Sequence record: OP557969.1
Direction: 5' to 3' (one strand)
DNA: 64,000 bases
The translations under genes were made by a program, and so were the position numbers. Every line of letters begins with the position of its first letter. Position 1 is the stretch's first letter. Shown here piece by piece: positions 6,872 to 15,436 of this stretch. The notes under the pieces were generated by a model, which was given only the letters and a program-made list of their open reading frames with translations, had not been told where the DNA came from and did not search any database.

Positions 6872-7483
6872 ATGAAAACTATCACTACTACTACTTATGT
6901 TATGGATTTTTCTGAATTGAACGCAGAACAAAAAACGTCAGCTATCGAACTGGTTCGGGAACGTGAAAAAAACTTAAACGACGATTATTTTTCTGAAAGT
7001 GAAATTGAATACTATAAAGAAACAGTACTACCGGAATATGGCATTAATGACGCAGAAATACAATTCAGTGGTTTTTGGTCGCAAGGTGACGGTGCATCAA
7101 TTAGTACTGACCACGTTGACGCAGTGAAGTTTTTACGTAAGGTAAGAGCATTAACTAAGTATCGCTCAATCCGTCACCTGCTGAATGAAGATGATTTGGC
7201 GATGAGTGTAAAGCGTTCTCACTCCCGCTACTCACATGAGAACACTGTAAGCGGGTACATTGAATCGGCTTACACTGATTTAACCGCAAAACAAGAAACG
7301 TTAGTTAATGAGCTTGAGGAACTGCTCACTGATACTATTCGTGAATTGTCACGCAAGTTATACCGTGATTTAGAGAATGCATATGAGGATCAATTCACTA
7401 CTGAAAACATCGTATCACTGATTGAGGGTAACGAATATCAATTCAATGTTATTGATGGCGTAGTAGAATCAATTGCATATTAA
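6872..7483 (+). CDS. conserved phage/plasmid protein (FSGFWSQGDGA family)
   Basis: 203 aa; motif IQFSGFWSQGDGAS; own promoter. Confidence 0.8.
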   Translation: MKTITTTTYVMDFSELNAEQKTSAIELVREREKNLNDDYFSESEIEYYKETVLPEYGINDAEIQFSGFWSQGDGASISTDHVDAVKFLRKVRALTKYRSIRHLLNEDDLAMSVKRSHSRYSHENTVSGYIESAYTDLTAKQETLVNELEELLTDTIRELSRKLYRDLENAYEDQFTTENIVSLIEGNEYQFNVIDGVVESIAY

Positions 7484-9245: not shown

Positions 9246-9545
9246 ATGAAAATTGCAATCATCGCCCTGGCTTTATCTGTTTCCTCTTTCGCTGTTAATG
9301 CGTCATTAGATGTAAGTAGTGAAAAATTCATTCAGTGCACTGTTGCAATGACCGATGAAAGAACTGGCGAGATTGTATTAAAGGATTTAGAGATCCAGCC
9401 GGAAGCATTTAAAAACGGCCCGTTCCATGAAGAAGACGAAAACGGTAGTACAACAATTTATTATGATGCTAGTACTAAACGCGGTTCGGTCACGGTTATG
9501 GATACTGAGAAAGTAACTCATACAGGCGTTATTAATTGCCGTTGA
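9246..9545 (+). CDS. predicted exported protein with signal peptide
   Basis: MKIAIIALALSVSSFAVNA signal-peptide pattern; two Cys. Confidence 0.75.
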   Translation: MKIAIIALALSVSSFAVNASLDVSSEKFIQCTVAMTDERTGEIVLKDLEIQPEAFKNGPFHEEDENGSTTIYYDASTKRGSVTVMDTEKVTHTGVINCR

Positions 9546-9566
9546 TTGATACTACGGGGTAACATC

Positions 9567-9797
9567 ATGACTAAGCGAATAGTTTTACTTAACGCTGGAA
9601 GTACTACACAACTCCTTAACGCCGTGCATTATGATATTGAAACGAGCGTCAATCTTATCAGTACTGTAGTATTGTTGGACACTGGAAAGGTCGCAAATGA
9701 TAAAGCGATTGCAGGTATACTAACGGATCTTAAACCAGGTTGCAGTACTCCAATAACTTTAAATGATAAAGTGTTTAATATTTTACTAACTGATTAA
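9567..9797 (+). CDS. early hypothetical protein
   Basis: GGGG RBS; ends before terminator. Confidence 0.65.
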   Translation: MTKRIVLLNAGSTTQLLNAVHYDIETSVNLISTVVLLDTGKVANDKAIAGILTDLKPGCSTPITLNDKVFNILLTD

Positions 9798-9803
9798 GTA
9801 CAT

Positions 9804-9825
9804 AGCCCACCAGGTGGGCTTTTTT
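9804..9825 (+). terminator. intrinsic terminator
   Basis: AGCCCAC-CAG-GTGGGCT-TTTTT. Confidence 0.85.
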
Positions 9826-9914
9826 GTTTTTGTAGTATTGTAGTACTGAGATACTTTGAAAATAGTTTTAAAAAAGTAGTTGACATTACCGCAAAAAGGC
9901 GTAGAATGTATTAC

Positions 9915-9987
9915 ATCAAGACGGGGAGCACTAAGTAGACCGCCAGTAAGTCGAACGAAAAACTGGACACGTCGAGAAAACTTTGAT
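9915..9987 (+). ncRNA. motif-2 structured RNA, divergent copy 3
   Basis: ATCAAG/CTTTGAT ends; CCAGT-AAG-N4-ACGAAAA-ACTGG hairpin with compensatory changes. Confidence 0.5.
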
Positions 9988-10030
9988 ACACTAATAAACG
10001 TAAACTAAACTTTAATTGAGGATTTATAAA

Positions 10031-10513
10031 ATGGCGAATGTAAAATCATTTCTGAAAGCACTGATTTCCAACGATACTGCTATTGCGGCTGAACTGCTGG
10101 CGGATCTGGATAACGATACCATGAAAGCAGTACGCAACAATTTTAACATTGCGTACAGTGAAGCTAAAGAACTGCAAGCCAAAAAGGTAGCAGAACTGGA
10201 AGAACAGAAAAAAGCCCGTGAAGAAGAACTACAAGCAACGATTGAAAGTATTCAGGCGGCAGTTGCTGGGTTGGATCTGGATGTAGTTGTAGAAATGGCA
10301 CATAAAGCCCTGGCAGTTAAGTACGGGGAAGATAAGCCAGTAGCTAAACCTAAAAAATGGATTCAGGAACGCGTAACGGTTGTTCTTGATAATGGCGAAG
10401 AACATTTAATTCCCGTGCGTGGTAACTGCATTGCGGTAGTTCTGGATGCTATCAAAGAAAGCGGATTGACTCGCGAGGAATGGATCGAAGCTCACCGCAA
10501 AATTGAAGCATAA
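10031..10513 (+). CDS. H-NS/StpA-like protein lacking the QGR AT-hook
   Basis: coiled-coil N-terminal half; C-terminus DNGEEHLIPVRGNCIAVVLDAIKESGLTREEWI parallels H-NS [34 protein letters not shown]. Confidence 0.55.
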   Translation: MANVKSFLKALISNDTAIAAELLADLDNDTMKAVRNNFNIAYSEAKELQAKKVAELEEQKKAREEELQATIESIQAAVAGLDLDVVVEMAHKALAVKYGEDKPVAKPKKWIQERVTVVLDNGEEHLIPVRGNCIAVVLDAIKESGLTREEWIEAHRKIEA

Positions 10514-10534
10514 CAATTAAAGTACTGAATCACT

Positions 10535-10561
10535 AGCCCACTTCTTATAGTGGGCTTTTTT
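10535..10561 (+). terminator. intrinsic terminator
   Basis: AGCCCACT/AGTGGGCT stem and T-run. Confidence 0.85.
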
Positions 10562-14975: not shown

Positions 14976-15179
14976 TTGACAATGATTAGCATGAAATCAG
15001 TACAAAAACAAATAGAAACATTATCAAAAATTAAACGTAAACAGTACTCATTAGAATATAATATCAATGGTAACTATCATCTAATGAAAGAGAATAATTT
15101 TATCGTCATTGATGAATCATTGCAAATTATTAGTATAGTACTGAAAGCATTAATTAATGATAGAAAAAGGTTAAAATAA
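14976..15179 (+). CDS. hypothetical protein
   Basis: ORF coupled to the TraR-like gene; start uncertain. Confidence 0.5.
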   Translation: MTMISMKSVQKQIETLSKIKRKQYSLEYNINGNYHLMKENNFIVIDESLQIISIVLKALINDRKRLK

Positions 15180-15436
15180 TGGCAGTAGGATTCGCGAAAG
15201 ATGGAGCCGAGCAAGATGAGATTAACGCAGTTATTCAAGCCGCCGTTAACCACGCTAGAAAGCAAATTAACGCACAAATAGAATCACTGATACATTGCCT
15301 CGACTGCGGCGATAAAATCCCTGAGAATCGCCGACAGGCTGTTAAGGGTTGTAAGTACTGCATAACTTGCCAGGAGGATCATGATAGTACTTTTAAACGT
15401 CCCCCGCGTAATTGTTGGCATAGATCTATGAGATAA
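15179..15436 (+). CDS. traR: DksA/TraR-family C4 zinc-finger protein
   Basis: CLDCGDKIPENRRQAVKGCKYCITCQ = CxxC-IPxxRR-CxxC; acidic N-terminal helix. Confidence 0.9.
   Translation: MAVGFAKDGAEQDEINAVIQAAVNHARKQINAQIESLIHCLDCGDKIPENRRQAVKGCKYCITCQEDHDSTFKRPPRNCWHRSMR

Follow-up and report, generated by a model that had tools for sequence, protein, structure and literature searches.

A divergent protein, very probably of the H-NS superfamily, with a conserved Gly-Asn loop in Escherichia phage ph0011 and related jumbo phages

Does a phage protein that resembles H-NS, with another sequence in place of the TWTGQGR hook, still contact DNA, or does it act as a DNA-blind partner of the host silencer? 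The question is raised by a small gene near the genome end of Escherichia phage ph0011 (OP557969.1, Asteriusvirus, 348,217 bp; Table 1). The window that we analysed, a stretch of 64,000 nucleotides, is the first 64 kb of this genome at 100% identity. H-NS silences AT-rich foreign DNA, and T7 gp5.5 and T4 Arn are phage antagonists of H-NS. An earlier note, made from the letters of the window, had described the gene product as an early-expressed, H-NS-like protein of an AT-rich jumbo phage and as a candidate dominant-negative anti-silencer. Its description of the locus was accurate: start codon, stop codon, GAGGA ribosome-binding site and GenBank coding sequence all place the gene where the note had it, and the genome size together with a G+C content of 33.9% in the window agrees with an AT-rich jumbo phage.

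The protein is in all likelihood a divergent member of the H-NS superfamily. We collected the phage family (21 close and about 13 distant homologues, 22-51% identity) and a comparison set of 37 diverse H-NS-family proteins from Pseudomonadota genomes. Aligned by hhalign with 12 gammaproteobacterial H-NS/StpA sequences, the phage family reached a probability of 89.8, an E-value of 1.8e-6 and a score of 43.0 over 84 co-linear columns. The match spans query residues 63-152 and H-NS residues ~49-134, from the last part of helix 3 through helix 4 and the linker into the C-terminal domain. Controls against the same H-NS alignment scored 12.0 +/- 2.3 after column shuffling, 15.7 +/- 2.8 (maximum 26.1) after shuffling in 8-column blocks and 22.6 after reversal. 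Since no shuffled control exceeded 26.1, the similarity to H-NS goes beyond chance. Asteriusvirus sequences alone scored 32.6 against H-NS (113 columns, query 24-151) and the distant homologues alone 39.2, and a second comparison with independent alignments (12 homologues, eight of them from named phages, against 12 enterobacterial H-NS/StpA) gave a probability of 84.3 and an E-value of 7.2e-6. On the same scale, short-type H-NS scored 46.2 and gammaproteobacterial H-NS 29.5 against MvaT; with 43 as compared to 46 for the short-type pair, the phage family is about as distant from H-NS as MvaT is. A GenBank annotation points the same way: gp011 of Klebsiella phage Muenster (QOE32183.1), a homologue of the query at 38% identity, carries the note 'putative DNA-binding protein' with an HHpred match of 97.2% to NP_417155.1, an accession that we confirmed to be StpA.

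The alignment that the earlier note had made by eye, with NGE, G, AV, A, ExG, an acidic pair and a terminal aromatic conserved and LIPVRGN in place of TWTGQGR, was reproduced residue for residue by BLASTP against H-NS of E. coli K-12 (from NC_000913.3). Query residues 88-152 aligned with H-NS 74-134 at 27% identity, with an E-value of 0.002 that applies to a single comparison. The hairpin turn N121-G122-E123 matches N103-G104-E105; beyond the hairpin, G131 falls on G113, A135-V136 on A117-V118 and A140 on A122, and towards the C-terminus E143-x-G145 falls on E125-x-G127, E149-E150 on D131-D132 and W151 on F133. The stretch L126-IPVRG-N132 stands where H-NS has T108-WTGQG-R114. In place of the core motif T-W-T/S-G-x-G-R/K-x-P the protein reads L-I-P-V-R-G-N-C-I, in which the Gly and an Arg at the Q/R position are kept. 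Because it lacks T-W-T-G-Q-G-R-x-P, we file the protein as a variant within the H-NS/MvaT superfamily and not as a canonical H-NS.

The AlphaFold2 model of the full-length protein had a mean pLDDT (predicted local distance difference test) of 78 and bore out the long helical N-terminal half and small C-terminal domain that the sequence had suggested. Helices were predicted at residues 7-12, 16-23, 28-77 and 83-97, followed by strands at 114-118 and 124-128, a loop at 129-134 (V-R-G-N-C-I) and helices at 135-144 and 148-155; these last elements reproduce the two-stranded hairpin, loop, helix and short helix of the H-NS C-terminal fold. When the model of residues 101-160 (pLDDT 79) was compared by VIA-align with 48,161 PDB representative chains, only 4 chains reached a Z of at least 2. 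Rank 1 went to the C-terminal domain of DNA-bound MvaT (2mxf; Z 3.6, root-mean-square deviation 2.8 A, 44 of 47 residues) and rank 3 the Ler domain-DNA complex (2lev; Z 2.2). With the full-length model, matches to long helices swamped the VIA-align result. Foldseek against Swiss-Prot AlphaFold models returned H-NS proteins at ranks 1, 2, 4-11, 13, 16 and 25 (E-values 0.27-1.7, probability up to 0.77, 24-27% identity over ~50 residues). Against 2.3 million clusters of the AlphaFold database, the full-length model was matched end to end at ranks 1-3 (E-values 1.8e-3 to 2.2e-2, probability 0.97-0.99) by proteins named 'DNA-binding protein', 'Histone' and 'H-NS-like N-terminal domain-containing'. 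In the ESM-Atlas, 86 of the 100 nearest clusters had H-NS or MvaT domains at a score of 0.75, which we take as a lead only. The independent structural searches, all of them made with predicted models, converge on one superfamily. The label H-NS-like was thus borne out by profile-profile, structural and language-model comparisons, with hhalign, VIA-align and Foldseek against AlphaFold models each finding the similarity and Foldseek against the PDB returning none. Ubiquitin-like and GDH fragments proposed by that last search were spurious, as none reached Z 2 after realignment.

For the N-terminal half the likeness to H-NS was partial. The predicted order of helices (two short, one long, a turn and one short) is that of H-NS alpha1-alpha4; MvaT has no alpha1 and alpha2 (PMC6936261). 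Residues ~61-97 align with H-NS ~49-83, the helix-turn-helix of the site-2 region, and the G-h-D turn between the helices keeps G80 in every family member and D82 in nearly all. The first ~60 residues had no detectable sequence similarity to H-NS dimerisation site 1, and hhalign of residues 1-82 against H-NS 1-70 gave no signal (probability 1.3). One distant homologue, P0026, scored below the cut-off of PF22470 (21.5 vs 24.5 bits).

The replaced loop proved to be one of the most constant parts of the family. Every alignment sets G131-N132 against H-NS G113-R114 and R130 against Q112. No exception to G131 and N132 was seen among 17 C-terminal domains or among 12 full-length homologues of at least six phage genera, down to ~22% identity. 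Also invariant among the homologues were G80, G122, R148 and I152, and nearly so D82, L83, R114 and V115. R130 is invariant in Asteriusvirus, and a basic residue stands just before G-N in 5 of 12 lineages: the loop reads V-R-G-N in Asteriusvirus, CBB and fHe-Yen9-04, V-K-G-N in XbC2 and T-K-G-N in Muenster. Within Asteriusvirus, mean column identity was 0.93 for residues 108-134, 0.91 for residues 63-100 and lowest, 0.69, for linker residues 101-107. That the hairpin and loop form the best-conserved segment argues against a vestigial DNA-binding domain.

A loop of this kind has a counterpart in MvaT, which lacks Q/R-G-R and has K-G-G-N-H as its loop 2 (Ding et al. 2015, PMC4466236); the sequence agrees with PDB 2MXE. 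On superposition MvaT N100 coincides with H-NS R114, while R80 stands in for Q112, and the mutants R80A and N100A lose DNA affinity and silencing (PMC4466236). By way of H-NS G113-R114, G131-N132 of the phage protein would correspond to G99-N100 of the MvaT AT-pincer. An invariant G-N at the position of the H-NS G-R therefore has a precedent, in MvaT, as a working minor-groove reader, and by analogy R-G-N seems to combine the loop solutions of H-NS and MvaT. We had considered R114 as the counterpart of MvaT R80 and dropped it, since residue counting puts R114 at MvaT K83; R130, at the Q112 position, is probably the better candidate for a second groove contact. As to the hook, the earlier note was right that it is replaced, LIPVRGN standing for TWTGQGR. 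Its further step, that the protein would therefore not bind DNA, was not supported in view of the invariant G-N, its place at MvaT N100, R130 at Q112, the strong conservation of hairpin and loop and the structural match to an MvaT-DNA complex.

The reading that we favour, at roughly even odds, is that the protein would contact DNA, oligomerise with itself and, by competing with H-NS/StpA or joining their filaments, protect the AT-rich phage genome from silencing by them. The gene would be transcribed by the host RNA polymerase at the very start of infection, and the protein would self-associate via its own N-terminal domain. Asn132 would take the role of MvaT Asn100 or H-NS Arg114, and Arg130 that of H-NS Gln112 or MvaT Arg80. 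The protein would then occupy or remodel nucleoprotein filaments on the 34%-GC phage genome such that host H-NS/StpA could not silence it. In this it would resemble Ler or Sfh, as a competitor or a partner in filaments, and not a decoy that is blind to DNA.

A number of observations weigh against this proposal. Linker and C-terminal domain carry a net charge of -1 (pI 6.1) in Asteriusvirus, as opposed to +4 (pI 9.6) in H-NS, and the helix behind the loop, C-I-A-V-V-L-D-A-I-K, holds one Lys where H-NS and MvaT have several; as judged from these sequences, DNA affinity may be weak or lost in the Asteriusvirus lineage. No curated model recognised the protein itself (Pfam PF00816, PF22470 and PF22055), Foldseek against the PDB found nothing relevant with either the full-length or the C-terminal model, and the structural scores of the predicted domain, which has only ~45 residues, are low in absolute terms. 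To a profile of 10 MvaT sequences hhalign detected no similarity (probability 0.1), so that the parallel between G-N and MvaT is one of position and structure and does not speak for a common origin of the motif. We found no experiments in the literature on AT-rich DNA binding or silencing by the protein, and a look-up of RNA-seq data returned only wastewater metatranscriptome contigs of related phages, without timing. The link to H-NS silencing itself comes from homology and the AT-richness of the genome only.

The charge of the same region differs within the family, being +2 to +5 in several distant members. In the linker (residues 101-113) the net charge is +2, compared to +5 in the H-NS linker. 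H-NS binding is aided by linker charge, whereas Rok binds DNA with a neutral linker (PMC6936261). The MvaT comparison also led us to reject the family as a sequence relative of MvaT; fold and loop position alone agree. Among the other searches, PF00816 had no match anywhere in the phage genome, and neither the protein alone nor the profile of its family had a meaningful match in sequence searches of Pfam, NCBIfam and the PDB, the best PDB matches (PKG2, ApeA) being due to chance; comparisons of a single sequence, or of an HMM with a sequence, thus missed the relationship to H-NS. WAE76875.1 was assigned to phrog_27871, whose function is unknown, and matched phrog_20181 less strongly. Weak matches of coiled-coil type were obtained to the scaffolding families PF06810 (E-value 0.1) and phrog_206 (E-value 0.009).

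The distribution of the gene bears on its role. Homologues were found in 38 phage records at 38-100% identity, and a distant member used as query retrieved 55 records from jumbo phages of Escherichia, Salmonella, Klebsiella, Erwinia, Pectobacterium, Cronobacter, Serratia and Yersinia; Xanthomonas phage XbC2 gave a partial match. Where termini are annotated, the gene lies inside the ~20-kb direct terminal repeat of these RaK2-like jumbo phages, 1-7 kb from the end. Examples from the terminal repeat or first kilobases are Muenster gp011, vB_Ec-M-J gp013, CBB_3, fENko-Kae01, fHe-Yen9-04 g001 and XbC2 gene 1, and on an IMG/VR contig of 366 kb the homologue lies at 1.4 kb. The gene is single-copy per unique genome sequence. 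One metagenomic contig (L149) holds tandem paralogues at 698-1291 and 2047-2640, 61% identical and both of 197 residues, which represent the long form of the family and have T-S-G-N-M loops. The phAPEC6 homologue gp528 is absent from the main text of the virion-proteome paper, and the protein is therefore probably not packaged with the DNA. Our literature search found no paper linking RaK2-like jumbo phages to H-NS.

Three other explanations have to be weighed against a DNA-contacting competitor. The one put forward in the earlier note, a DNA-blind protein that joins H-NS/StpA oligomers via its helical domain and poisons filaments or bridging like truncated H-NS or H-NST, would account for the absence of the canonical TWTGQGR motif and for the near-neutral linker and C-terminal domain in Asteriusvirus. 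Truncated silencers are known as dominant negatives (PMC7074111). As the best H-NS alignment includes the site-2 helix-turn-helix with its G-h-D turn, a heterotypic site-2 contact is conceivable. A decoy, however, needs no C-terminal domain, yet domain and loop are what is most conserved here, with G-N invariant at ~22-38% identity. Residues 1-60, moreover, have no detectable similarity to H-NS site 1, and several distant members have a basic, H-NS-like charge of linker and domain. We regard a dominant-negative role as rather unlikely.

A chromatin protein or regulator of the phage's own, independent of H-NS, appears similarly improbable. Such a protein could coat or bridge the DNA of the phage or the host and in this way arrange an unusually large genome, set the moment of the early-to-middle switch, or keep nucleases or defence systems away from DNA. 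The predicted fold and architecture are those of DNA-bridging proteins, the gene is among the first in the terminal repeat of many jumbo-phage genera, a Xanthomonas phage included, some relatives have tandem paralogues, and the N-terminal site 1 is unlike that of H-NS. On the other hand nothing links such a protein to any specific target, the neutral charge in Asteriusvirus fits bulk DNA coating poorly, and gp528 is probably not packaged. There is very little chance, finally, that the H-NS resemblance is fortuitous or convergent and that an unrelated coiled-coil protein, for example a scaffolding-like one, happens to carry a small beta-alpha domain. The weak scaffolding matches, the lack of a curated H-NS model at threshold and the negative PDB Foldseek search speak for this, but the co-linear profile alignment lies ~10 standard deviations above shuffled controls and was replicated three ways, MvaT, Ler and H-NS came up in independent searches by structure, and the gene sits in an early region under a sigma70-type promoter and not in a late structural module. 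The scaffolding-protein reading was rejected on gene context and on the convergent H-NS evidence.

With H-NS and StpA the phage protein, as predicted, shares the order of helices, the G-h-D turn, a flexible linker and the domain of beta-hairpin, loop and two helices, as well as profile similarity over H-NS ~49-136 with N-G-E, the loop Gly, A-V, E-x-G, the acidic pair and the aromatic; it differs in being phage-encoded, 23 residues longer and unrelated in sequence over its first ~60 residues. With MvaT/MvaU (PF22055; 2MXE/2MXF) it has in common a loop ending in Gly-Asn, and their C-terminal domain is the top structural match. The lysine network behind the MvaT loop is absent, however, MvaT is devoid of the two short N-terminal helices, and there is no clear equivalent of its second pincer arm, R80, with R130 probably standing at the H-NS Q112 position instead.

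Ler, from the LEE island (2LEV), is a further parallel: it too combines an H-NS-type C-terminal domain with an N-terminal oligomerisation domain unlike that of H-NS, and it too is encoded by a horizontally moving AT-rich element. Ler competes with H-NS on AT-rich DNA and acts as a counter-silencer (PMC4466236). Unlike the phage protein, it has retained the G-R motif with its Arg, it is smaller, and it does not come from a phage; its comparison with the query was made by structure. H-NST and truncated H-NS are dominant negatives that relieve xenogeneic silencing, H-NST having no C-terminal domain (PMC7074111). The phage protein showed the reverse of H-NST-type features, with a complete C-terminal domain and no similarity to site 1. 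LUZ24 Mip is likewise a known H-NS/MvaT antagonist that relieves xenogeneic silencing (PMC8501957). Mip, gp5.5 and Arn are small and not homologous to H-NS; the phage protein, by contrast, is a homologue of full length whose C-terminal domain is conserved. Full-length homologues are also encoded by phage EPV1 (H-NS) and by plasmids (Sfh, Acr2, Pmr) and presumably control how the element itself, or the defences of the host, are silenced (PMC7074111); those are close to their hosts' silencers and keep the canonical motif, while the phage family is far from H-NS. Muenster gp011 shares the terminal-repeat position and the GN loop, although this loop is more basic (T-K-G-N-K-G-S-M-K) and its link to StpA is a database annotation. 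P0026, 92% identical to gp011, has a net charge of +3 for linker and domain, and gp011 was hence judged basic.

Table 1. Features of the H-NS-like gene, its product and its flanks (positions in the window)
Feature	Position	Strand	Remarks
Intrinsic-terminator-like hairpin AGCCCAC...GTGGGCT + T run	9804..9820	+	closes the upstream unit
Sigma70-type promoter-like site TTGACA-16-TAGAAT	9880..9907	+	11/12 consensus matches
Leader, ~120 nt	9908..10030	+	folding z = +1.24, no significant secondary structure
Ribosome-binding site GAGGA	10018-10022	+	sequence
Coding sequence, 160 aa	10031..10513	+	ATG 10031, TAA 10511-10513; WAE76875.1, annotated as hypothetical protein in OP557969.1
N-terminal helical domain, residues 1-97	10031..10321	+	predicted: two short helices, one of ~50 residues, a fourth helix
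G80-L81-D82 turn between long helix and helix 4	10268..10276	+	aligns with H-NS G69-I70-D71
Linker, residues 98-113	10322..10369	+	low pLDDT; least conserved segment
C-terminal domain, residues 114-160	10370..10510	+	beta-hairpin, loop, two helices; predicted H-NS/MvaT-type DNA-binding fold
R130-G131-N132 loop, replaces H-NS Q112-G113-R114	10418..10426	+	alignment
Intrinsic-terminator-like hairpin + T run	10535..10556	+	ends the monocistronic unit

The gene appears as a transcription unit of its own (Table 1); its leader had no match in an Rfam scan. Nine perfect TTGACA-16/17-TATAAT promoters lie on the + strand of the first 20 kb (3753, 6812, 14035, 15444, 16483, 17433, 17773, 18044 and 18474), and the promoter-like sites of this region number 101 in all, compared to 74.9 +/- 8.5 in shuffled sequences. 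Many TTGCAA-16-TATAAT sites occur as well, and these and the nine perfect promoters each precede a small open reading frame. This looks like an early gene array driven by the host RNA polymerase in the terminal-repeat region, and promoter and genome position of the H-NS-like gene suggest early expression. Early expression, as claimed in the earlier note, is thus plausible from the gene's own promoter, the promoter array and the terminal-repeat position.

The two terminators that flank the gene have the stem AGCCCAC...GTGGGCT in common. One metagenomic contig joins position 9535 to 10521 and skips 985 nt including the gene; with only 21 nt at 85% likeness on the anchoring side, the contig hints no more than weakly at a deletion variant in nature that lacks the H-NS-like gene. 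A DksA/TraR-type zinc-finger gene is found at 15179-15436 of the window, ~5 kb downstream of the H-NS-like gene. In Salmonella phage Munch a gene of this type lies directly downstream of the H-NS-like homologue and on three metagenomic contigs two genes downstream; on a related locus (L154) it occupies 1046-1306. The two genes may represent a conserved early pairing of transcription-related proteins.

Neighbouring small open reading frames had no informative Pfam matches. The one just upstream, at 9246-9545, has a signal-peptide-like N-terminus, MKIAIIALALSVSSFAVNA, and no Pfam match; its product may be a secreted or periplasmic early protein. Further upstream, the open reading frame at 6872-7483 equals in length Muenster gp006 (347-958, 612 nt, in the terminal repeat), which is annotated as a YeeU-like antitoxin; the window frame has no Pfam match.

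In conclusion, the gene gains a name and a testable hypothesis, where the ~30 Asteriusvirus annotations listed all say hypothetical or leave the gene unannotated. It lies near the genome end in jumbo phages of E. coli, Salmonella, Klebsiella, Erwinia, Pectobacterium, Yersinia and Xanthomonas. Its invariant Gly-Asn loop offers a natural test of how far the DNA-reading loop of H-NS can change, with AT-rich recognition kept or altered, and connects the 'Q/R-G-R' solution of H-NS with the 'R...G-N' solution of MvaT. As a more speculative and rather doubtful extension, RaK2-like jumbo phages may carry a third H-NS/MvaT lineage, which would build phage-specific filaments or mixed site-2 filaments with H-NS. 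If true, there would be a 'phage chromatin' from the first minutes of infection, which would prevent xenogeneic silencing and perhaps access of defence nucleases. A private version of the silencer would be a strategy unlike that of the known small, non-homologous phage inhibitors gp5.5, Arn and Mip.

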